A stretch of 64,000 nucleotides of DNA from Bugula neritina (lineage: Eukaryota; Animalia; Bryozoa). The position numbers were made by a program, and so were the translations under genes. The stretch spans positions 24,506,628-24,570,627 of the forward strand of contig OZ037767.1 in assembly GCA_964035545.1 (NCBI GenBank), given 5' to 3'. Shown here piece by piece: positions 1-53,334 of the stretch. The stretch's first letter is position 1; every line of letters starts with the position of its first letter. The notes below the pieces were generated by a model, which saw only the letters and a program-made list of their open reading frames with translations, was not told where the DNA came from and made no database searches.

Positions 1-181
1 GATTATAAAAATCTCTAAGTCAAACTGAGTTCTTACTACGGTATTTCACTAACCTATCTCCAGCTCAATTGACTCAGTGAGTCGGAGCTGAGCGATGCAA
101 TCTAGTTTCATATTAAGATATAGTTAACTCACCCCACGATCTGTTGTCGTAAGACATACTGAATTTGTGAAATGGTTTGAA

Positions 182-3100
182 CTACTGCTTAGAAACACGT
201 CTACTCTTGACTGCATCAGCGTATGAAAAGATCGAGCAACGTGGTTGGGGTGCGTGATTAAGACTTTGTGCACCCGGCGGATGAATTTTGTTTCTATTTC
301 CGCCGATACAAAAGTTGATATTTCCGTAGTGTTGACAACTCCCACCTTTGCTCGATACTTTTCTCGTACGGTTTTCCCCTAGACTTTCATGCGTGCCGCT
401 TTTAATGCAGTCACATACGAAGTCTTTCAAATATGCGGGGGGTTGCCTCGTACGCTGTCCCCTTTCTAGGGGGGGTGACACGCTCACCGGTTCATTAGCA
501 GGGGCCTCTAATGGCGTCTCTACTTCACCGTTAGCGGTCACTTCTTCTTGTTCTCCGGATAGAGCCCCTCCCTCCGTGGGGGTTTGCACTTCCGGAACCG
601 GCTCGGTTTCCGGAAGTGGTGGAATCAGACTTGGCGGTGGCGGACACGCTTCTGTTGGCAAAAGCGGTCGCTCATCTCTCACCAATCTTTTCTCTCGCGG
701 TATGACCACTTCATATTCAGGTCCATGCCACCGTCGCCCGCGCGTTGTTGTCTGCCTCCTGGGCTCTAACAACGGGGGGGCTTCTCCCACTGCGTCGGGG
801 CTAGCCCAATACGGCTTCAAGCGGGACTCATTCTGGATAGACACCTGTCCTGAGCGCTCAATCTTGTACGTATGGTTGGGCATAGCCTCGACGATCACGT
901 AGGGTCCCACGAACTTAGGCTGTAACTTAGCCGCCTGTCCGCGACGCCTACGGTAATTGACCATCCACACCTTATCCCCTGTTTGGTAGAGGGGTGGTTC
1001 CTCGGAATCTTCGTGTCGCACCTTCCACTGCTGTTCACGCAGTATATCGTGTGCGGCCTTCCTCCGTTCCACTAGTTCACTGGCATACTCGTGAATCGAG
1101 TTGTCTAGCTCTGGAACATGGTAGGTGAGATGGTCAGGTACCCGGGTCTCTCTCCCGAGCATCAAGAGGTTTGGGGTCTCACCAGTACTGGTGTGTGGGG
1201 TGCTACGGTACGCACGCATGACCTGCGGCAACACCGTGTCCCATTCCTCTTGACTGCGTCCAAGGAGGAGACTCCGGAGCGCATCACCTAGCATCCGGTT
1301 GTTGCGCTCCACCACCCCGTTACCTTGCGGGTGATACGGGGTGGTCCTGCTCTGATTTACTCCCCAGAGGCGGCAAAGGTCGCTCATCAGTTGAGACTGG
1401 AATTGAGCGCCTTGATCAGAGTGTATCTGCTCGGGGAGACCGAAATAACAGAATACGTGTTGGTCTAGTACCCTGGCCACTGTCGGGGCTGACGCATCTG
1501 GGATAGCCAGAGCATCCGCCCACCTAGTAAAGTGGTCGGTTAATACTAATATCCAACTATTGCCTCTGGGGGTCAGGGGCATGGGTCCGACCAGGTCAAC
1601 AGCTACCATTTGCCACGGCCTGCCAGCATATAGCCTCCGCCGTCCCGCTTCACCAGGGAGACGGCCATGCTTACTGGTCTGGCAGATCTCACACTGTTTG
1701 ACTCTGAGTCGGACGTCCCGCTCCATGCGTGGCCAATACCACCGGAGTCGTAATTTGGATATCACTCTCTTGACCCCTGCGTGGGCCTGTTTGTGAGTAT
1801 CCCAAATCAACTCACGGCGGATGGCAGTGGGGCAGACTACCCTCTTCCTCTCCGGATGTCTGCCGCTGGCGGCTAGAGAGATGGTTAGTAAACCATCCTG
1901 CCCGATTCGCAGCGAGTCCCAACGCTGACAGTATAGCCGGAACTCGGCGCATCCCTGTCGTATGCGTTCCTCGCTGGGTCGTCGCCCTTCCCTTTTGGCC
2001 CGATATATGTCTGCCACGACTCCAGGCAGCTCTTCTTGGAGCTTCTTCAGCTCTCGGACATTATCGGCCAGTACAGGGTTGGCGCGGAGGTTTTGTACAA
2101 CCTCCGGGGACTCGTCAACCTCCTGTCTGAGTTGACCCTGGTCCCAGTCAAACGGTGCTCCGTGGTGAGCCAGCGTCTCCAACTCGCATCGCGGGGGACC
2201 TCCATCCCTCCTCTCGATGTTGAGACACTGTTTGCAACCTCCATCAGGTCGGCGACTGAACCCATCCGCATTGCTGTGTCTCTTGCCCGGTCGATGTTCG
2301 ATCCGGTATGAGAATTCAGCTAGGATTTCGAGCCACCGGGCGACCTGACTAGAGGGCTCTGCTCTCTTGCACAACCAGATCAGCGAGGCATGATCCGTAC
2401 GCAGCCGGAACTTCCTGCCATATAGGTATGGTCTGAAGTGCTTCACTGACTTGATTACTGCCAGCAGCTCCTTGCGGGTAGTGCAGTAATTTCGTTCAGT
2501 GGGTGAGAGAGACTTGCTGTAGTAGGCTACTACTACTTCTCGGCCTTCCTGCACTTGAGACAGCACAGCGCCAACATTTTGGTCACTGGCGTCAGTGTCG
2601 AGGATGTACTCCAGAGTGGGGTCTAGGTAGGCCAAGATGGGCGCCGTTAGCAGGCAGCCCTTGAGGCGGTCGAACGCTCCTTGTTCGACTGGGGTCCACT
2701 GCCACGTCACTCCCTTTGCGGTGAGCCGGTTTAACGGCTGTGCTATGCCCGCAAAGTCTGGTATGTATTGTCTGTAATACCCTACCAGCCCCAAGAAAGC
2801 CCGGAGTCCGGTCAAGTCTTGGGGGGTGACCCAGTCTTCTATTGCCCGTACCTTCTCGGGATCCGTTGCCACGCCGTTTCGACCGACAACGTGCCCCAGG
2901 TACTTAACCTCTGGCTGCAATAGAGCGCACTTGGAAGGTTTGAGCTTAAGACCGGCACCTCGCAGTCTCTCAAAGACCTCCTGCAGACGACTGACATGTG
3001 TCTCGAAGTCTGGGGAGATCACGATGACATCGTCGAGGTAGATCAGCAGTGTCTTCCAATGGAGCCCGCTGAGGACTTGCTCCATCAACCTCTGGAAGGT

Positions 3101-4813
3101 GGCTGGGGCGGAGGTTAACCCGAAAGGCAACACCTTCCACTTCCACAAACCGTCCCGTGTGATAAACGCCGCTTTCTCCTGGGCGTCGGGACTCAGAGGA
3201 ACTTGCCAATAGCCACTCAGCAAGTCTAACGTACTGAAGTACTTGCTGCCGGCTAGGGCGTCCAATGACTCGTCAATACGAGGTAGAGGGTAGGCGTCCT
3301 GTATGGTTATGCTATTGAGTTTGCGGTAATCCACACAGAACCGCCAACTGCTGTCTTTCTTCCGGACCAGTACGACCGGCGAGCTCCACGCACTATGGGC
3401 GGGCTCTATCAGTCCCCGGTCCAGAAGATCCCGTACTTGTCGGCTAACCTCCTTCTCTTTCTCCGGCCCCAGCCTACGTGTGGGTTGCCGGACAGGGACT
3501 GTCCCTGCAGTCAGCGGTATTTCGTGTCTGACAACTCCAGTCAGCCCCATGTCATGATCTCCGCTGCTGAACACATCACCGTAGTCGCGTAGTAACTTCG
3601 CCATAGCTTGGCGTTCTTTGTTACTCGCGCAGCCGCCACAGGCTGTGTCATACAACTCCCGGAGATGTGCTGAGACTGTCCCTCGCCCTTGAGTAGGGCA
3701 CCGAGGGAATGCCTCCGTCGCATCACCGAGTGACGGGCCTACGTCCTCCTCCTGAACAGAGTGAAAACGGCCCAGCATAGACCCAGCCGGAAGCTTGACA
3801 GACTCGGTAAAGGGGTTGACGCACTGCACTAAGATCTCCCCTTGCTCAGTCAGCTGATTCAGACTGCTGGCAAGTTGGATCTTTTCGTGCGCGCCTTCAA
3901 CTACCCCGAGTCCAGAGATCCGGCTATTGTTCACCCTGCAGTGAATGGTAGCCCGGGAGCGGCCTGGTATGGTACGGTTGCGTACCACCTGCACACCTCC
4001 CACTAAAGGGCGGCCGAATTTGTCGACGCAGGCGAGTTCTCGCCCGGACATCATCATCGCAGATTTACTAAAATCGATGTGACATCCGTGCCGTTTTAGG
4101 AATGGCATCCCGAGGATGGCGTCCTCCTTGAGCTGACTGACGATGAACGTCTCTTGGATCGTTTGATCACGGACTCGTCCCGTCAGCTCAATTATACCAT
4201 AGAAGGGAAGGCACGACCCGTCAGCTAGGGTGCCATACTCCCCCTCGTATGGTTCCATCTCGCCCCTGACCCTAGCACTGAGGGTGTCGAAGAGTTGGCG
4301 GCTTAAGAGGTTCGTGGTACAGCCCGAATCAATGAGGAAAGTAACAGCTTTGCCTTCCAGTTTACCGGGCAAGAAATAGCTGTTCCCATGGGGCTGCACC
4401 TGAACTCTCTCTTCAGGCCTTACTCTCGCAGGGAGTACCTCCCTCGCTTTGGGTTGCGAAGGAGGTCTCTTGGGATGGTGGTAAGTGGGCCTCGGGGGTG
4501 CCGAGGCTAGATTTCCGGCTACCTTTGTTGGCTCCCATCCAGATTCTTGGGCTGGTAGCCCTTCGAATCGATTGTGGAGGGGCATGGAAAAGGTAGCGGC
4601 GGGGCGGAGCCCCTTGCTGGTCTGTTGTGGCTGTTGCCACTGTCGGTTGCCAGTACGCGGTGCCCGTCTGGGTGACCTGCGTTTCTTCTTCCCTGGAGGT
4701 TTCATCGTCGGCCCGCAGGAGGTGGGAACATCTGCGGGCCGCGGTAGTTTAACCCCGGAGTTAGGAAGGGACAGTACCTGCGGAAATGTCCTTGATTTCC
4801 GCATTCCCAGCAA
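182..4813 (-). CDS. pol: Pol polyprotein (protease, RT, RNase H, integrase), probably expressed as a Gag-Pol fusion by -1 frameshift
   Basis: Protease FLIDSGC; RT WRFCVDYRKLN, LPFGL, YLDD; RNase H LDTDAS, KELLAV, TDH; integrase HHCC finger (H-x3-H...CEIC), AVDLVGP, HSDQG, VVERNN, and KFVGPY (GPY/F). The first residues of the listed ORF probably lie upstream of the frameshift site. Confidence 0.96.
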   Translation of the reverse strand: MLGMRKSRTFPQVLSLPNSGVKLPRPADVPTSCGPTMKPPGKKKRRSPRRAPRTGNRQWQQPQQTSKGLRPAATFSMPLHNRFEGLPAQESGWEPTKVAGNLASAPPRPTYHHPKRPPSQPKAREVLPARVRPEERVQVQPHGNSYFLPGKLEGKAVTFLIDSGCTTNLLSRQLFDTLSARVRGEMEPYEGEYGTLADGSCLPFYGIIELTGRVRDQTIQETFIVSQLKEDAILGMPFLKRHGCHIDFSKSAMMMSGRELACVDKFGRPLVGGVQVVRNRTIPGRSRATIHCRVNNSRISGLGVVEGAHEKIQLASSLNQLTEQGEILVQCVNPFTESVKLPAGSMLGRFHSVQEEDVGPSLGDATEAFPRCPTQGRGTVSAHLRELYDTACGGCASNKERQAMAKLLRDYGDVFSSGDHDMGLTGVVRHEIPLTAGTVPVRQPTRRLGPEKEKEVSRQVRDLLDRGLIEPAHSAWSSPVVLVRKKDSSWRFCVDYRKLNSITIQDAYPLPRIDESLDALAGSKYFSTLDLLSGYWQVPLSPDAQEKAAFITRDGLWKWKVLPFGLTSAPATFQRLMEQVLSGLHWKTLLIYLDDVIVISPDFETHVSRLQEVFERLRGAGLKLKPSKCALLQPEVKYLGHVVGRNGVATDPEKVRAIEDWVTPQDLTGLRAFLGLVGYYRQYIPDFAGIAQPLNRLTAKGVTWQWTPVEQGAFDRLKGCLLTAPILAYLDPTLEYILDTDASDQNVGAVLSQVQEGREVVVAYYSKSLSPTERNYCTTRKELLAVIKSVKHFRPYLYGRKFRLRTDHASLIWLCKRAEPSSQVARWLEILAEFSYRIEHRPGKRHSNADGFSRRPDGGCKQCLNIERRDGGPPRCELETLAHHGAPFDWDQGQLRQEVDESPEVVQNLRANPVLADNVRELKKLQEELPGVVADIYRAKREGRRPSEERIRQGCAEFRLYCQRWDSLRIGQDGLLTISLAASGRHPERKRVVCPTAIRRELIWDTHKQAHAGVKRVISKLRLRWYWPRMERDVRLRVKQCEICQTSKHGRLPGEAGRRRLYAGRPWQMVAVDLVGPMPLTPRGNSWILVLTDHFTRWADALAIPDASAPTVARVLDQHVFCYFGLPEQIHSDQGAQFQSQLMSDLCRLWGVNQSRTTPYHPQGNGVVERNNRMLGDALRSLLLGRSQEEWDTVLPQVMRAYRSTPHTSTGETPNLLMLGRETRVPDHLTYHVPELDNSIHEYASELVERRKAAHDILREQQWKVRHEDSEEPPLYQTGDKVWMVNYRRRRGQAAKLQPKFVGPYVIVEAMPNHTYKIERSGQVSIQNESRLKPYWASPDAVGEAPPLLEPRRQTTTRGRRWHGPEYEVVIPREKRLVRDERPLLPTEACPPPPSLIPPLPETEPVPEVQTPTEGGALSGEQEEVTANGEVETPLEAPANEPVSVSPPLERGQRTRQPPAYLKDFVCDCIKSGTHESLGENRTRKVSSKGGSCQHYGNINFCIGGNRNKIHPPGAQSLNHAPQPRCSIFSYADAVKSRRVSKQ

Positions 4814-5655
4814 AAACTGACCGTTTCCCCCTGTGGCGGCGCCGGTGGCCGTACGGGCTCAGCGGCGGTACCTACTGGGGTTTGGGGTGTCAGTGTTGCT
4901 ATCAGTTTGGCCAGCATGTCTGTCAGTTGAGTGACTTTCGATGCTGTCGCTAACTGAGCCATGGCAGCCGTGGCGGAGGTTTCCTCCTCTCGTCCTGCTG
5001 CCGTGTCCGTGCGGTCTACCTCCACTTGGCGGGAGCTCCCGCGACTTTTATGCATTTGACTTGCTAGGAGGTAAGCTTCCCCCTCAGTCAGAGCATCTTC
5101 AACGGTGGTGACTCCCCTAGCTAGAAATTGGTGGTGGAGACCCAAATCGTCGACAGATGCTGTGAAAGCGTCGAGGGTATAATTCTCGCGGTTGACTGGG
5201 GGCAAGTCGTTGTATGCGATCTGTGCCAGCTTCATGACCGTGGCGGCATGCTCCCGCAGCGGGGTGCGGGGATCACGCCGCAACCTCTGCAGTCGGGCCC
5301 TGGCATCTGTAGCAGAGAGGCCGAAGCGGGTCCGCAGAGAAGCAAAGATATTATCGATGTCTACGCCCAGCCCATAAGGCTTGGCTTTGTCCATCAATGC
5401 CATTCTAAGCTTTAGCAGGGCCACCCTAAGGGGCCACTGGGCGACGTCCATTACGTCGCTAAACTCTTGGATGAATTGTTCCACCTCCTCTTCGCCCGTG
5501 AAGGTGGGCGCCTTTAACCGGTAGCAGTCTTCAGTTAGTTCTCGCGGAACCCTTCGCTCTTCTACTACATGGTTAACAGGCATTGTCTCTACAGCATTGT
5601 CTCTACGCTCACCTTCTACTGCCGGTGGTTGCGTTCCAGCATTTTCAGTCTCCAT
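4702..5655 (-). CDS. gag: Gag protein with CCHC zinc knuckle
   Basis: 317-aa ORF starting just after the PBS; CWECGNQGHFRRYC matches CX2CX4HX4C; overlaps pol, which is in the -1 frame. Confidence 0.93.
   Translation of the reverse strand: METENAGTQPPAVEGERRDNAVETMPVNHVVEERRVPRELTEDCYRLKAPTFTGEEEVEQFIQEFSDVMDVAQWPLRVALLKLRMALMDKAKPYGLGVDIDNIFASLRTRFGLSATDARARLQRLRRDPRTPLREHAATVMKLAQIAYNDLPPVNRENYTLDAFTASVDDLGLHHQFLARGVTTVEDALTEGEAYLLASQMHKSRGSSRQVEVDRTDTAAGREEETSATAAMAQLATASKVTQLTDMLAKLIATLTPQTPVGTAAEPVRPPAPPQGETVSFCWECGNQGHFRRYCPFLTPGLNYRGPQMFPPPAGRR
4709..4753 (-). promoter_or_regulatory. -1 ribosomal frameshift signal: G_UUA_AAC heptamer plus 10-bp stem-loop
   Basis: Minus strand reads GGG TTA AAC in the gag frame (4753-4747), a 5-nt spacer, then CGGCCCGCAG, a 13-nt loop and CTGCGGGCCG. 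Confidence 0.8.
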
Positions 5656-5667
5656 CTTGGATGCACT

Positions 5668-5685
5668 ATCCCACCGCTGCCACCA
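5668..5685 (-). other. Primer binding site complementary to a tRNA-Leu 3' end
   Basis: Minus strand TGGTGGCAGCGGTGGGAT begins 1 nt after the LTR terminal CA; the plus strand ATCCCACCGCTGCCACCA resembles a tRNA-Leu 3' end with CCA. Confidence 0.85.
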
Positions 5686-5686
5686 C

Positions 5687-5995
5687 TGTTATGTTTTTCA
5701 GAATTAGGGTTGATATGCAATCCAGAGAGTCTAATTACTTGTTATAGAACTGCACCAGGATAAGTCGAGTGAACGAGTATATATTTTAAACACACTAACA
5801 CATTACAAAAACGATACAAATACATTTGACAATTTACACATCTAGACTATTCAGCACTCTAACTTCGACTGACTAACAGCGGGAAAACTATTACTGCTGC
5901 TAACTAATCCGAAGCCGCTAATTGGCTATTAATTGTTCCGGGTCAATTACACGACCCTGTATACTGTGCTGCTGGTAGCTCCACAAGCCACCACA
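5687..5995 (-). repeat. 5' LTR, about 309 bp
   Basis: TG...CA termini on the minus strand (TGTGG...TAACA), bounded by the PBS on one side and the TA microsatellite on the other. The outer boundary cannot be confirmed without the partner LTR. Confidence 0.75.
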
Positions 5996-6255
<260 letters not shown>

Positions 6256-45060: not shown

Positions 45061-47157
45061 TACTTCAAATCAAGATGGTGCTTATAGTTCGAGTGAATAT
45101 CTAAAAAATTATTTAAAGTATGGTGTGCACAATTAAAAATAGAAACAATAGTTACAAGATGTTAATCTATATTGGTGAAATTTTTGGAAAAAAAGTTAAA
45201 AGCTGTGCAATCTACACTTTTTGCTGACTCAATGAGATGTTTAAAAAAATAAACATTTAGGCAGCATGTTTATGTTATCTGTGCACCTTATAAAGTAGTT
45301 TTATATGGCTATTATGTGTACACTGGATACTAATTCATACATTTAAGGATAGATTCTAACTGAAAATGAATAGGCCACGACAATTAAATGGTAAGCTACT
45401 AGTTATAAATTTTTTTTTAGCTTTGCTCCCTCAAAATGCTGTTCTTACAGTAGCAACCTAATTTTGACAGTGAGTTTTCATTTTTGTCTTATTGTTGATA
45501 ACAAGCCATGTATAGGCTAATTTGACAACTTTATAACATCACTTGCCTTAGAGAAGGAGCTGATTAGCAAATGTTTACATGAGCCTATCAGTTTCACTTG
45601 ATAAATTAATAGATGCAGCAAAAATGCCAAGTATGCAATAGGTGACGTCTGTGAATGAATATCCGGCCATTATTAGACAGTTTCTACTTATTATATAGTT
45701 GTACTTTCTGACTGTACCAGGAGTTGATTTAGTTGTTAGTGCTATGTGCTGTCGCTTTGTTGATTCACGCTTGAATAATTTATTTTCATGCAACAATATT
45801 ATCAAAGGAAAAAGCACGGTGGGAATTTACACGTTCTAAGTTTCAAGTTGTGTAGGCAGCTTGATAGATATTATATTACAGAAGAATGACGTTGCGATAC
45901 AAATATTCACCACTGTGAAGTCTAGTATGTTGGTTGTACACAGATAATAGATATGTATGTAGATAGTATTGCAATATTGTTTTTATCTACTCTTAACAAT
46001 CATACTGCATAAGAAAACTTCCGGAAGGGTGCATCTTGGTAAACAAAAGGCGAGATAAAAATACCTGTCTAATGCTAATTAGATTACAGAATGTTTGACA
46101 TAGCCAATAAATCTTGCACATTGTAGTCATCATCCTTTCAGTTATTTATCAAGCTCAGTTGCTGCAGCTGAGACTAAAATTAAATGGCATCACCTTACAA
46201 GTAGATATATGAAGATAAAGATGACTGTGACTGATGTCAACATGCCAGTTATTGATCTCTAAAATTATTAATATTGTCAAGACGCAAGTGAAAAGATAGC
46301 AAAGCTCAATCTCCAACTGTAAAAGTTTGATCTGGCACTTTTAGTTTTAAGCAATTACAGTTTATTTTTAGCTAGAGAAATATTAGATACTGCTTGAAAG
46401 CTGATTGCCATCGCCTTAGTTTAGGAAACTAAACAGGCTGCATATTAGCCTTTCATGTGTGCATTTCTCAAATTGCTCACAATGTGGCTTAGTTATGCAT
46501 GGAAATTTAGCAAATTTGAAACTTAAAACTTTCAAGGCTATTGATTAGGCATTTCATAAAGCTGTGTTATATAGTAGATGAGTAGTTGTAGGCCTATATG
46601 CACAATGTTGTAGTTATTATAATCAAACAGTTGACCACTTCTATAGAATAATTAAACATACTTCGATGTATAGAGGTGTGTTATGCCTGAGAGCTTAATC
46701 AGACCTCAATTCCCTTTGGGCAGAATGTTTCATATAATTATGCACAATAAAACTGTACTGCACAGCCATGCATGAAACCAATACTTAGTATTACACAATA
46801 CTTATGTTTTAACCATTTAATATTTATAATAACAATCTGCAGGTAAATTTAGGTTAAATACAACTTCTGGATAAAACCAATTTTTCATACTATTTAATTA
46901 TAACTTAGAATGCATGGAACATATTGTTGGCCAACCGATAATACCAATCGTTTGAAGCAATGCTACTATTTGCCTGGAACTCTCACATAGCTAAAACAAT
47001 ACGTTACTACAGCTTGCCTTGCAAAGTATTGGGGCATCCTAATGACGTGGTGACTTTACAGTTTCAAACAGAAAGTAATTCCAGCACTATTAACTCAGCT
47101 ATCATTATGCTAAAAATATTTCATCGAGATTAAATCATTGTCTATAATGATATGTCA

Positions 47158-47216
47158 ACCAATTGTATGATAGGCTGCCAGTATATAAGCCAGAAACATG
47201 CAGAGATTGTCATTAT
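47158..47216 (+). promoter_or_regulatory. Core promoter of peptide gene A (CCAAT, TATA, Inr-like)
   Basis: CCAAT near 47159, TATATAA at 47182-47188, TCATT about 28 nt downstream; the same arrangement occurs in copy B. Confidence 0.6.
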
Positions 47217-47264
47217 TTGTTTTACCACTTGATTTGATCAACAACAACAAAAATATATTTCATA

Positions 47265-48124
47265 ATGGTATTTAAAAAGCAGCTGTTACTGGTGATGTTT
47301 ATTTATGCAATAATTACTTTATCTTCTGCAAAACCGTAAGTATTAAACTTGACTGAATTAGTTTCATTGAGTATAATATTATTTTGTTTATTATTTACAG
47401 CTATATTGCGCATGTTATTTTAAACACGAACAAATATTGCTCCTTAAAAAATTAGCAAGCAATGACTATAGTAAGATTTTTAATGACTGCATTACATTTG
47501 CGACACTTTTTCATACAAGGAATTACAAGATTCATGCTTTGTATTAATTCACTGATATGTCTTGCAATCTACTATTGCACAGAGCTGCAAGAGACTTGGT
47601 AGATGCAATCTTAGATGAATTGGAAAGAGAAAGGATCACCAGAGTGCTGCTCAGCCGAAGCTACCCACAAGTCGGACCTGGAAGTCTGTTTCAGACCGGT
47701 ACTAAGAAGACCTACAACACTCCTCAGAACCACCCTGACTGGCCGAAGATACCATCAGGTAGAAGGTAAGTGACAGCAACATGGATAAAGCTTTTCCTCC
47801 ACTGAGATTCAAATACAAGACCTCCAGCTTGCAAACAGACGTTTTAACTATTATACCTCAAGAACTACCGGGTCATCTCAACACTACAATATGATATACC
47901 CCTCTCTTTGAAATTGCCTAAACAATTTAGTTGTTTGCTGTTTTACTCAAAATTAATTTAGGAACACTTGCAGTACATAAGTGTTGGTTGAATATAGCAA
48001 CTTTCAAGGCCTAATGGAAGAAGAATCAATGTAGACTCATTGTTGCTTCTAATAAATTTTGTAAGCAACAAATTCAAAGCAACAGTTATATACTCTAGTT
48101 TTGTTATTTTGCAGGCTCGGATAA
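47265..48124 (+). CDS. Secreted prepropeptide A, 87 aa; predicted mature peptide TYNTPQNHPDWPKIPS(GRRL)-amide
   Basis: Exons 47265-47335, 47583-47765, 48115-48124 with GT-AG sites give MVFKKQLLLVMFIYAIITLSSAKPAARDLVDAILDELERERITRVLLSRSYPQVGPGSLFQTGTKKTYNTPQNHPDWPKIPSGRRLG*. Signal peptide, pro-region, KK site, terminal Gly; structure conserved in copy B. Confidence 0.85.
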
Positions 48125-49449
48125 AAACAAGTATTTAATGCGGGACAAGACACAACTAAAACTATCTCCATCCCTAACCTTGGGTTAGATAATCTCAGTG
48201 TCGTCTTCAAAGCTAACAACAGTCTAATCAGCCACTTTCAGTTAAAGTACCATGCATTAGTTTATCACAGTGACCCTTCCTACTCAAACCCCTCATCTAG
48301 TGTGACCGGTCTTTTCCTCTGTCCCAGTTATGCAGTTTTGTAATTTTTGTTTGTGATTGTTTAAATAGTCTTCTATCTCAGATCTTCATGTTGATATTTC
48401 CATTCATAATACTGTTATACTAAGTTAACTTTTTGAGTTTGCGACTGAATCTCTATCCTTACAACTTAGACATGCAATTCTATGAAAATACATTTTTCAA
48501 TTATTTTATATCATAACTATTTATATTTTTTGTGTTTGGTATAATATATTTATTAAATAACGTTATTGTATTACGACATGATGTTATCACTTTTGTGATT
48601 GGGTCACATTCCAGAGGTGCTCAAAGTTTGCTTGAATTTTTGTGAAATATAAGTTTAAAAAGGCCAAAATTTTGATATTGGTGTAAAAACATACCATATC
48701 AAAAATCCTTATCGTAAGCAGTTTTTATTTATCTTTAAATAATTATTCAAACTGTTAGAGGAGCTGAAGATAATCTAAAGATATGAATTTTACAGTATGC
48801 AATGATGATAGAATTAATATAGTTTAAATATAAATAATTAGCATCACGTTCTCCTAGCTATATATAGACAACTTGAAATAGCCAAGTTACTCAGATTGTC
48901 TGAAATTATTATCTGCTTCTTATTAAACTTTTGTTTTATTTAAGAATTTGAAGGAAAGAGTTTATTTTATTGTGTAAAGTGTTTTCATGAATTATGAAAA
49001 TATTTGCTTGTACGTTTTTTCTCTTATAAAAAACCGCTGCATTACAAATGCAAAGCACAGGATATTAGCGAGTTTCTTCATAAGCTGTAGAGCCTCACTA
49101 TCAAACTTTGAACTTACAATTGTTTGTATTTTATCAGCACTGAATATAAAACCTATAATTTGCTCATTCCCATATATTAAACAATCAACTTAGAATTAAG
49201 TAGCTCCAATGTAGTGAGCTACAATAGTTTACTAGAGTTGATATAGGTGTATTAAGGGCTACTATTAGAGTTGTTTATGTTTATATTAGTGATCATGGCT
49301 TTAATTTTAACATTCTAAATGTAAGTGTTCTAGTGTCAGTATACCTTACACCTCACCAGTCTCAAATCAAAGGAAATTCCAGCATTATTAACTCGGCTAC
49401 AATTAGGCCAGGAAAAAGTGCGTAGAATCATTGCCTAATGGTCCTTCAG

Positions 49450-49520
49450 CCAATCAAATGCCTGACCGGTGCACACACTGCAGTATATAAACAAGAATCG
49501 GGCTGGACTGTTGTCATTCA
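49450..49520 (+). promoter_or_regulatory. Core promoter of peptide gene B (CCAAT, TATA, Inr-like)
   Basis: CCAAT at 49450, TATATAAA at 49484-49491, TCATT at about 49514. Confidence 0.6.
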
Positions 49521-49576
49521 TTGCACAGTAGTAAACTACTCAGCACTAGCTACAGTAACCTAGCATACACTTTATA

Positions 49577-50288
49577 ATGGAATTTAAAAGCCAATTACTA
49601 TTACTAGTGATATTTATTTATGGAATAGCCACTCTATCTTCGGCAAACCCGTAAGTATTAAAGCAAATTATATTTTTTCAACAAAAATGTTGCTCATTGT
49701 CAATTATATATGTATGTCAGTATTGCATGCAAAAATGATGGTGTTTACTTTTTAAAAGAGCAAACAATCACTAGCAAGATTCTTTTAACTATAACATTAC
49801 ATTATATGATGTTTTTCTTACAAAGTTGCATATAAATTCCATCATTTCTTTCAATTCCTACTATTTTACAGAATAATCAAAGATGAAATAGATTTAATCT
49901 TAGAAGAACTAGAACTAGAAAAACTTAGCCGTGCAATACTCAACCACAGCTACCAACAATCCGAATCAGGAAACCTGCTCCAGACAGATGTTAAAAGAGT
50001 ATACAATTCCCCTCAGCATCACCCTGACTGGAAAGGGCCACCATCAAATGCAAGGTGGGTGGCAGAAATATGATGGTCAAATTTTATAATTGCTCAGAAC
50101 CTGCAATTGTTTGCTACTTTACTTACAATACATTGATAAATGCATTACAGTAAATAACTTTTGATTGAATATGAAGGCTTTTCAATGTGAGGTGGGGGGC
50201 TCAATACATGTCTGTAATATATTTTCTAAGCCACAGAATCAGAACAATTATTAAACTAACGTTTCTTGATTATTGCAGGGGTCGGTAA
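49577..50288 (+). CDS. Secreted prepropeptide B, 88 aa; predicted mature peptide VYNSPQHHPDWKGPPSNAR-amide
   Basis: Exons 49577-49650, 49872-50054, 50279-50288 give MEFKSQLLLLVIFIYGIATLSSANPIIKDEIDLILEELELEKLSRAILNHSYQQSESGNLLQTDVKRVYNSPQHHPDWKGPPSNARGR*. KR site and G-R terminus; exon 2 is 183 nt in both copies. Not in the ORF track. Confidence 0.85.
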
Positions 50289-52012
50289 ACACAAGTATTT
50301 AAAGTGGGACAAGACACAAGTAAAGCTATCTCCGTCCCTAACCTTGTGCTGGATAATCTCAGTGTGTCTTCAAAGCTAACAACAATCTAGTCAGCCACTT
50401 TCAGTTAAAGTACCATACGTTAGTCTATCACAGTGACCCTTCCTACCCTAACTACATGGCCAGTGTATTCAGGAAAACTATACAGCCTCATATCACATTA
50501 CTAGTGGCTAACCTTGGCTGAATGGCAGAGTGTTTTACCATGTATTTAACTCTCAATTATGTTACTCAGTAATTTATTAGTGAATCTTCTATCTCAGATC
50601 ATTATGTTGATATTTCCATTCATAATATTGTTATACTAAGTTAACTCTTTGAGTTTGCAACTGAATCTCTACCCTTACAACTCTGACATGCAATTCTATG
50701 AGAATACATTATTCAGTTATTTTATATCATGACTATTTATATTTTTTGTGTTTGGTATAATATATTTATTAAATAACATTATTGTATTACAACATGATGT
50801 TATCACTTTTGTGATTGGGTCACATTCCAGAGGTGCTCAAAGTTTGCTTGAATTTTTGTGAAATATAATTTCAAAAAGTTGAACTTCCAGTATTGATATT
50901 AATTTCGTCTAAAAACATAGCGTATTGGAAATCATTATTAGCAGTGTTTATTTATCATAAAATAATTATCTAAGTTGTTAGAATCACTGAAGATAATTCA
51001 AAATCAATATATATATCTTTTTCATATCTCCTTTAATTAAAACCCCTCCATCTTCTTTTGTGTCTTCTAGTAAGGTGAAACGCTTTGTAAATAATATTCT
51101 TGTATGCATAACTCAGCAATCAATAATATCAGTGTTACGACAATGTGGATAAGTCATGATATAATGACCTCAAAGCAAAAAGTGGGCTACTACAGTAAAC
51201 CAACTACTTCTACACTATACACAACACTATTGCATATACTTCCACTGCAATTAACACGCATTCTAAAAAGGTGAAAAAGTATACATGGCTCATACCTTCT
51301 TTCATTCAAAAGTATAGCGAAAAAAATGCTTTATATATTAAGATGTAATATTTAGGTCAAACTTTTTTTATGTGACACCAGGTTCTTTATCAAAAATTGC
51401 TTTCTGTAAGATTATTTACTATCTTTGCATAATATACATAGTGTACTACGAGTATATACAAGATGTGCATAGAAGATTTCCCACAGCTAGTTTATACATA
51501 CATGATTATAACAGATACAATGTTTCAAATATCAAAAAGATGATGGCCAATGATAGGCGGGTGATCCAGCTATACATAATGCATAGCTGAGTGTTAGGCA
51601 ATGGGAGTTGCATAAACCCTAGTGTGCTAATTAAAATTCTTAGGCTGGGAATAAAGCCTGCACCAGAGTTCTCCCAAGAGACAGAGAATACTAGCTGGTA
51701 GTCTAGTTTACTTGTAGTTGATGGAAGTTGACCTTTTAGTGTTACAACCGCCTGCTTCTCCTTCAGATTAGGCAGTGAAGTAAGAGTATAATCTCAAGCC
51801 AGTCAAAAGTAATGTCTGGGAGTTGGGAGTTTTTCTAAGGATTCATTTTTTGATTACTCTAATATTAATAGCGTGTAGAGATGCCAATGTTCCAAAAACT
51901 AGTTAATATTATGTGCAGAGAAACTAACTAGTCTCAGCCTACAGATAGCTCAAGGTTTTAATTTACAGCAGTTATTTCACTTTAAACTTGGAGCTTGCCT
52001 AGCACAGAGAAT

Positions 52013-52161
<149 letters not shown>

Positions 52162-53334
52162 AGAGAGAAAGTGGCTTATTGTGTAACAGTGTTTTCCTAA
52201 ATTACAGGAATATCTTTCTCCATTTGCTTTTCACATTATAATATATAAAATGCATTAAACAAGGTAAAAAGTAGTATTATGTATCAGGTTTTCATTGTAG
52301 AATTTAGTGTAGCAGTTTACTGCCTAAACTAGAATTAATTTTATTAGCCCTAAACTACTAGTTTTATTTATATTCATTATATATTGGAGAAGCAATGGCC
52401 TAGGATTTAGCAACTTCATTTGTGATGAGCTACAATAGCTCACTATGTTTTTTTAGGTGCATGACATACCAGCCACTATTTAAAGTTTAAACTGTTTACA
52501 AAGTTGCTAACAAGTATAACAGTGATCCTGGTGATGTCCATTAATAATTAATTGTTCATGTAGACTTAAATTTTGAGCAGTCAAACTATTTTTCAAAATT
52601 CAATTGTTATAATTCTAGACTCAGAACTTAAAATAAAATATATGAAGTAGTAGTGAAACCCTCCATTAAACCTGGTGTTACTTTTTAGAGCTTCAAATAG
52701 TAGATTTATTAGTTTTCGAAATGGAAACAATGCGATTTTCATAGGAAAGAGTGGGTGTTACACAATGTTATGTACATGGATGCATAGCTACAGACAATAG
52801 TGTTACGAGGAATAATGCATTGGAATGTCACAGGTCAACGAGCATTAATATTTGTATTTTAATAATACTATACTTGTATCATGGTTACCAAGAATAAATT
52901 CCTTATCATTGTTGTCATTTATTGTTTAAAAAGAACCAAATTGGAAAATTTCACCTAAAAACCTTCATGCCAATTAGTTACTATAACCGTTGAGCAAATA
53001 ACTATAATGGAAGTTTGCAAATCAAATGCTTTCATTTTCAAAACAATAACATGACAGCGAGTTTGTATTTTTACGAAACAATGATTTTGAAAAAGAGGCT
53101 GTAGAAATATAGAAAAATAGAAACACACTTGTTATTTATGATCTATGCACAATCTTTGTAAAATACTAATAATAATATAAAAGACTGTTAAAAAGACTAA
53201 CAATAGACATGCATTTAATATCAGATTGAGCAGCTAGAAAAAGTTGATACAAAAATAAGTGAAACTCGTTGCTTTTACCCATTTAAAAATGTTCGCAACA
53301 AAAAACTCTTCGTTTTAACCATCGGTCCACCATT

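Follow-up and report, generated by a model that had tools for sequence, protein, structure and literature searches.

A tandem pair of probable prohormone-type genes in Bugula neritina encodes candidate amidated peptides of a family without an assigned relative

A 64,000-nucleotide (nt) stretch of DNA from the bryozoan Bugula neritina (assembly GCA_964035545.1, contig OZ037767.1, positions 24,506,628 to 24,570,627 of the forward strand; hereafter the window) contains two neighboring genes of three exons each, copy A (47265-48124, +) and copy B (49577-50288, +), which are real, probably lineage-restricted genes of the prohormone type. Coordinates are positions of this whole stretch unless another sequence is named, and all features of the pair lie on the + strand. 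Read from the sequence, each gene encodes a precursor of ~88 residues that would release a single C-terminal peptide with the core YNxPQxHPDW. Comparison of the pair with a second Bugula genome and with large protein collections supports, at the level of sequence and evolution, a probably amidated peptide family without an assigned relative.

To our knowledge, peptide signaling in bryozoans is almost unknown, and the orphan precursor pair provides two concrete candidates for work on it in B. neritina, a species that is important in biofouling and whose larvae settle under the control of the nervous system. The gain is an incremental one: every study of a neuropeptidome yields orphan precursors confined to one lineage, and genes of this kind are fairly common. 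The only bryozoan survey, published for B. neritina in 2016 (PMC4990251), missed families that are seen by antibody staining. Our analysis also corrects the public annotation, in which the ortholog of copy A was modeled without its signal peptide.

Gene structure and encoded precursors

Copy A is preceded by a promoter block at 47159-47214 that holds the words CCAAT (47159), TATATAA (47182) and the initiator (Inr)-like TGTCATT (47208). The coding part of its exon 1 (47265-47335), 23 codons and 2 nt long, encodes a predicted signal peptide with a Ser-Ser-Ala end and is followed by the donor GTAAGT at 47336. Exon 2 (47583-47765), 183 nt long and bounded by the acceptor CAG/A and the donor AAG/GTAAGT, encodes the pro-region, the dibasic site KK (47704-47709) and the peptide, which begins at 47710 and includes the core YNTPQNHPDW (47713-47742). 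The coding part of exon 3 is 10 nt long including the TAA stop (48115-48124), completing an Arg codon and then reading Leu-Gly-stop. Copy B repeats this plan, with CCAAT (49450), TATATAA (49484) and TGTCATT (49512) at 49450-49518, an exon 1 coding part of 24 codons and 2 nt that again ends its predicted signal peptide in Ser-Ser-Ala (49577-49650), a 183-nt exon 2 (49872-50054) encoding the pro-region, KR (49993-49998), the peptide from 49999 and the core YNSPQHHPDW (50002-50031), and a 10-nt coding part of exon 3 (50279-50288) that completes Arg and then reads Gly-Arg-stop.

The three promoter words have their order and spacing in common between the copies, with 29-31 nt from TATA to Inr. All four introns are of the GT...AG type (GTAAGT three times, GTGGGT once) with a pyrimidine-rich stretch ahead of each AG, and the guanine-cytosine (GC) content of exon 2 is 40-49% compared with 25-34% in the introns, the window being AT-rich overall (about 32% GC). 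An ATTAAA lies ~430-480 nt past each stop codon in both copies. In the whole 216-Mb assembly the copy number is two, consisting of these genes only. The initial annotation had described two three-exon genes with a 183-nt exon 2, a 10-nt last coding exon and CCAAT/TATA/Inr-like promoters; every coordinate agrees with the sequence, and the three promoter words stand in matching order and spacing before both copies.

Both precursors are laid out as a signal peptide, a ~42-residue pro-region containing an acidic, helix-like block (D..D.IL.ELE.E), KK or KR, and a 21-residue C-terminal tail. The tail carries the core YN[ST]PQ[NH]HPDW, in which eight of the ten positions of YNxPQxHPDW are invariant, and it ends in ...KIPS-Gly-Arg-Arg-Leu-Gly in copy A and in ...SNAR-Gly-Arg in copy B; the peptides that follow KK and KR read as they were first written down. 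The signal peptides were assigned from a Lys in the n-region, a 12-residue hydrophobic core with a mean Kyte-Doolittle value of 2.8-3.0, and Ser-Ser-Ala at positions -3 to -1, features that by this rule-based judgement are kept in both paralogs and in both Bugula genomes. Across the four sequences available (two paralogs in each of two genomes) the dibasic site, KK in copy A and KR in copy B, always occupies codons 41-42 of exon 2, and a terminal Gly or Gly-Arg is always present. The processing grammar recognized in the initial annotation, running from signal peptide and pro-region to dibasic site and C-terminal Gly or Gly-Arg, is therefore kept in four of four sequences. Retention of intron 2 in copy A would bring the reading frame to a stop directly after Gly-Arg-Arg, so a ...KIPS-amide product would be independent of this splice. 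The amidation signal of copy B is present in the spliced form only.

Conservation and selection in a second Bugula genome

Both genes are found in the same order in the independent B. neritina assembly GCA_010799875.2 (contig VXIV02002479.1), where 4.8 kb around the gene pair is collinear with the window at 85.7% DNA identity. The orthologs have identical exon lengths and all splice sites are intact. Synonymous divergence between the two Bugula genomes is 0.13-0.20, which suggests that the window genome belongs to the Bugula neritina group but to a separate, related lineage within it. The promoter block of copy A aligns with that of its ortholog without gaps at 92.5% identity, and exon 3 of copy A is identical at 10 of 10 nt, giving Gly-Arg-Arg-Leu-Gly-stop in both genomes. 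In exon 3 of copy B, 4 of 10 nt differ between the genomes and the B. neritina sequence reads Arg-Ile-Gly-stop, the terminal glycine still being kept.

The ortholog of copy B has been deposited as KAF6025269.1 (A0A7J7JG36; hypothetical protein EB796_016437 of Bugula neritina, 88 residues), with a three-exon gene model that matches ours down to the 10-nt final exon. Exon 1 of copy B is identical to residues 1-24 of this protein, and exon 2 is 92% identical at the protein level. AUGUSTUS produced the annotation of GCA_010799875.2, guided by hints from a published transcriptome (PMC7576161) that may have covered this gene. No paper citing the accession KAF6025269.1 was found in a literature search. 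The ortholog of copy A is annotated as a 109-residue product (L005:3004-3845 on VXIV02002479.1) with an ATG start inside intron 1 and an end ~300 nt past the conserved stop. Neither the exon for the signal peptide (L005:2735-2805) nor the final, conserved 10-nt exon (L005:3541-3550) is included. This model without a signal peptide is most likely a mis-annotation. The description of the genes as hidden, given when they were first noticed, thus needs qualification: it does not hold for copy B, whose ortholog is already in GenBank and UniProt as a three-exon model, and it holds for copy A in the sense that its ortholog is annotated wrongly, without the signal peptide.

The two paralogs are old, judging by their divergence. 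Their second exons are 62-64% identical in DNA and 48% in protein, with a synonymous divergence (dS) of about 1, and they still share the reading frame, the 183-nt length, the splice sites, the dibasic site and the core. Between paralogs the ratio of nonsynonymous to synonymous divergence (dN/dS), calculated from small counts, is about 0.07 for the core decapeptide compared with 0.42 for the whole of exon 2, in agreement with the earlier observation that YNxPQxHPDW is the best-conserved part. Between genomes, no insertion or deletion (indel) event was seen in 531 exonic nt compared with 43 in 4017 non-coding nt, when 5.7 would be expected in the exons (P=0.003), and the mismatch rate is 7.3% in exons and 10.2% in non-coding sequence. 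The ratio of nonsynonymous to synonymous differences per site (pN/pS) between orthologs is 0.25-0.27 for exon 2 of both genes. Within copy A it is 0.13 for the peptide and 0.37 for the pro-region (small counts), and 16 pro-region positions, including D..D.IL.ELE.E, are invariant across all four sequences. Because old paralogs keep their structure, exons are free of indels and pN/pS lies well below 1, there is good evidence that these are two real protein-coding genes under purifying selection.

Search for relatives

Protein databases were queried with exon 2 of each copy, with a four-sequence exon-2 alignment or profile and with the full-length ortholog KAF6025269.1. Pfam returned no match for either exon 2 or for KAF6025269.1, and a word-index protein search with exon 2 of copy A returned none either. 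With the four-sequence alignment, the word-index search matched only KAF6025269.1 and an unspliced B. neritina genomic open reading frame (ORF). An exhaustive HMMER profile search with exon 2 against 1.84 billion representative proteins gave four matches, which included KAF6025269.1 and the unspliced genomic ORF from B. neritina-associated metagenome/DNA contigs; the other two were long repetitive proteins with E values of 1e-5 to 1e-4, which we regard as compositional noise. A metagenome scan produced 599 pattern matches, none of which was confirmed.

The core motif was not found in two supplementary sets of precursors, one covering nemerteans, brachiopods and phoronids (PMC8557429) and one covering molluscs (PMC6425005), and a literature search for the motif, the accessions and bryozoan neuropeptide work found nothing relevant. 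Searching neuropeptide collections by pattern, as suggested in the initial annotation, matched no described family. By homology, Wong et al. 2016 (PMC4990251) had identified 11 neuropeptide or hormone precursors in B. neritina: FDSIG-like, pedal/orcokinin-like, vasopressin-like, NPF, GPB5 and six insulin-like peptides. The initial claim that the family matches nothing known stands for Pfam, the 1.84 billion proteins, the metagenome scan and the neuropeptide collections of three papers, in which no described family matched, and it is tempered by a weak motif resemblance to pigment-dispersing factor (PDF)/cerebrin, which is weighed below.

The ESM Atlas model of KAF6025269.1 has a predicted local distance difference test (pLDDT) score of 0.55 and a predicted template modeling (pTM) score of 0.22, and judging by this low-confidence model the protein does not form a folded domain. 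The ESM Atlas clusters closest to it by features are DH31, PDH, gastrin/CCK, NPFF, urotensin 2B and NPF precursors, at 0.86-0.90. As a lead only, these predicted neighbors agree with the precursor grammar.

Alternative explanations

By architecture PDF/cerebrin is the closest known type. It is nonetheless improbable that the pair represents a PDF/cerebrin-type precursor that has diverged strongly, whether an ortholog or an old paralog of the spiralian gene, and the sequences do not support membership. Phoronid and brachiopod cerebrins end in ...YNLPDF.KI-Gly-basic or ...NLPDL..I-Gly-basic (supplement of PMC8557429). Their size and architecture match those of the pair, with a single amidated peptide placed C-terminally after a dibasic site, and the segment NHPDWPKI of copy A aligns with them without gaps, sharing N, P, D, the aromatic residue, K and I (six positions out of eight), with YN.P also present just upstream; a PDH precursor cluster is moreover among the three nearest ESM Atlas features (0.90). 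However, the Pfam model PF06324 (Pigment_DH), which is arthropod-based and only 18 positions long, matched neither exon 2 nor the full-length ortholog at E<=10, and a genome-wide Pigment_DH scan gave no signal at the locus of the pair. The PDF/cerebrin consensus spans ~17-18 residues, D-x-[LM]-x-N-L-P-D-[LF]-x-x-I-amide, directly after the dibasic site, whereas in the pair the nine-residue N-terminal half is absent, only ~six residues (two of them Pro) stand ahead of the motif, and copy B is devoid of the K-I part. Local alignment to the genome's own cerebrin-like exon beats ~95% of shuffles for copy A (p about 0.05) and for copy B scores no higher than shuffled sequences do, in a comparison that was made post hoc and across many families. 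This more canonical exon, on the same chromosome and 0.86 Mb away, may already fill the ortholog slot. A degenerate DNA pattern modeled on the C-terminal end of cerebrin located it as an open frame at G000:C3:25418048-25418101 (L013:1471-1527, +), beyond the window, reading ...LDYLTNLPDFSSI-Gly.

Several observations concern the cerebrin-like exon itself. The frame comprises 19 codons with AG and GTAAT flanks, reads ...ENLLDYLTNLPDFSSI-Gly, and bears a close likeness to the C-terminal peptide of phoronid and brachiopod PDF/cerebrin. A possible last exon of two nucleotides plus a stop lies ~80 nt downstream, and a hydrophobic-ORF scan upstream of the exon (C3:25.418 Mb) gave no convincing signal-peptide exon. 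The genome-wide Pigment_DH scan had two matches elsewhere, which were dismissed as chance, stops being present around both.

The other alternatives concern what the genes make, or whether they make anything. That the peptides are secreted in a non-neuronal role, for host defense (as proline-rich antimicrobial-like peptides), as a pheromone or settlement cue, or as a glandular or epithelial product, appears unlikely. Many defense and toxin peptides show the same architecture (signal peptide, acidic pro-piece, dibasic site, C-terminal mature peptide, three exons), the genes are tandemly duplicated, the copy B tail evolves fast (pN/pS about 1) and each 21-residue tail holds four prolines; against this, there are two copies only, with no expansion, and the peptides are weakly cationic and free of amphipathic character. 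Proline-rich antimicrobial peptides are strongly cationic, contain at least 25% Pro and repeat P-R-P-type motifs, and the tails were rejected as members of this class with 4 Pro in 21 residues (19%), a charge of about +1 to +2 and no PRP motif. Toxin and skin-peptide genes pair a conserved prepro-region with a hypervariable mature peptide, a type that was also rejected, the core being the most constrained segment of the mature peptide here (dN/dS about 0.07) and variation being restricted to the tail after Trp. Somewhat less probable than either cerebrin descent or such a role is a functional product in the form of the conserved acidic helical pro-region, or of an unprocessed small secreted protein, with the dibasic and Gly features incidental. 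The 16 invariant pro-region positions and the near-invariance of the copy B pro-region between genomes fit this idea, but the pattern is reversed in copy A, the dibasic site, decapeptide core and terminal glycine are kept in all four sequences, and the ESM Atlas model has no confident fold. Least probable, and by a wide measure doubtful, is the view that the open frames are not expressed genes and owe their conservation to the recent common ancestry of two close genomes. The exon mismatch rate is indeed only moderately below the non-coding one; the old paralogs, however, retain frame, an exon 2 of exactly 183 nt, splice sites, dibasic site and core, the 43 non-coding indels have no exonic counterpart, pN/pS is well below 1, and the promoter words are conserved.

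Some observations weigh against a prohormone-type pair whose amidated peptides are the active product. The signal peptides were judged by rule only. Between copy B orthologs pN/pS is 1.06 for the peptide, with its variable tail, and 0.07 for the pro-region, which has one change in 40 codons (small counts); because this pro-region is near-invariant while the tail is close to 1, the pro-region could be the functional part. The C-terminal end of the tail, amidated end included, is the least conserved part of the peptide, its variation being confined to the residues after Trp. In the protein collections searched there was no spliced form from an RNA assembly, and the core motif was not found in the B. 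neritina survey (PMC4990251), which was homology-based and unable to detect orphans. Finally, the ESM Atlas neighbors lie at scores where chance matches occur.

Proposed processing and function

In prohormone processing, PC1/3 or PC2, carboxypeptidase E and PAM act on the precursor. From the gene structure, its conservation, the purifying selection and the precursor grammar we infer a comparable course of secretion, cleavage, amidation and signaling for the pair, and a producing cell type to suit it. The signal peptide would be removed co-translationally after Ser-Ser-Ala and the precursor sorted to the regulated secretory pathway, where a prohormone convertase would cut after the conserved KK or KR, a carboxypeptidase would trim basic residues, and the exposed glycine would be converted to a C-terminal amide. 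Each precursor would yield one peptide of 16-20 residues composed of the conserved core and a variable tail, with the end ...KIPS-amide in copy A (or ...GRRL-amide if RR stays uncut) and ...SNAR-amide in copy B. The cleavage rules followed are those of Veenstra 2000, cited in PMC8557429.

On balance we favor, by a modest degree of confidence, the reading that the tandem paralogs each encode a prohormone-type prepropeptide whose peptide would act as a neuropeptide or peptide hormone through a receptor. Since the tail with the amidated end varies most, the conserved core is not a typical C-terminal amide motif. The survival of the copy B terminal glycine through 4 of 10 nt differences in exon 3 weakly suggests that amidation would serve to cap the end of the peptide more than to have it recognized. 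We hypothesize more tentatively, and at short of even chances, that the YN[ST]PQ[NH]HPDW peptides serve as ligands in a peptide-receptor system that is confined to bryozoans and that other spiralians lack. If so, they would constitute a new, tandem-duplicated neuropeptide family with its recognition core in mid-peptide rather than at the amidated end, and they might act in larval behavior or settlement of a fouling species.

The genome was also scanned with PF01082 (Cu2_monooxygen), a family that includes the amidating enzyme and dopamine beta-hydroxylase (DBH)-like enzymes, and 24 exon-level matches to the family as a whole were found at several loci. The matches lie on contigs C3 (26.63 and 32.01-32.02 Mb), C4 (5.72-5.73 Mb), C9 (5.52-5.54 Mb) and C5 (12.64 Mb), several of them in tandem clusters. 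Invertebrates usually have single PHM and DBH-like genes, a number that the loci here exceed.

The homogenized 3' tract and the surroundings of the pair

The 3' untranslated region (UTR) and flank of copy A (48125-48660, +, ATTAAA at 48552) are homogenized with those of copy B (50289-50880, +, ATTAAA at 50768) at 89-94% identity. The full tract, 48044-48660 compared with 50210-50880, covers the end of intron 2, the 3' UTR and ~110 nt past ATTAAA and begins ~70 nt before exon 3, whereas the promoters, introns and exon 2 of the paralogs are only 55-66% identical. Within the tract, identities are 79-89% all round and two paralogs from the same genome resemble each other at least as closely as orthologs do, and both copies share genome-specific substitutions relative to B. 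neritina. Ortholog identity is 84-85% in the tract compared with 87-94% in introns, so the tract evolves no more slowly. A dispersed repeat was ruled out, there being two copies only in the genome. Patchy gene conversion continuing after the lineage split, rather than constraint, would explain these identities best.

Elsewhere in the window, positions 1-6000 form a block of 54% GC, compared with about 32% for the genome, that holds an uninterrupted minus-strand ORF of 1543 residues (182-4813). Its domains (aspartyl protease, reverse transcriptase, RNase H, integrase and Tf2-type SH3) are those of the pol of a Ty3/gypsy-type long terminal repeat (LTR) retrotransposon, and a 317-residue minus-strand ORF just upstream (4702-5655) has no Pfam match. 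Among the neighboring ORFs at 38-64 kb of the window no Pfam family scored above cut-off; a 76-residue ORF (52011-52241, +) with a weak, below-cut-off match to Trypan_PARP, a family of acidic Pro/Glu repeats (21.8 bits, cut-off 100), is most likely a low-complexity acidic repeat.

Comparison with known systems

The closest counterpart of the pair is KAF6025269.1, the direct ortholog of copy B in the other lineage (about 86% DNA identity over 4.8 kb), which was deposited without a name or function and differs in its tail, ...KGQSSNTR-Ile-Gly in place of ...KGPPSNAR-Gly-Arg. Wong et al. 2016 (PMC4990251) described 11 precursors that agree with the pair in organism group and in class of molecule, and none of them has the core motif. 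PDF/cerebrin precursors (PMC8557429) resemble the pair in being small, with a signal peptide, a pro-peptide, a dibasic site and one ~17-20-residue C-terminal peptide ending in Gly and basic residues, and the motif N-x-P-D-aromatic-x-K-I is common to them and copy A. Prohormone-type precursors in general are likewise similar to the pair in their signal peptide, conserved KK or KR, terminal Gly or Gly-Arg and non-globular precursor, and in a mature core that is, between the paralogs, the most constrained segment. Unlike generic neuropeptide precursors, however, the pair is conserved in the N-terminal and middle core of the peptide and not at the amidated C-terminus.

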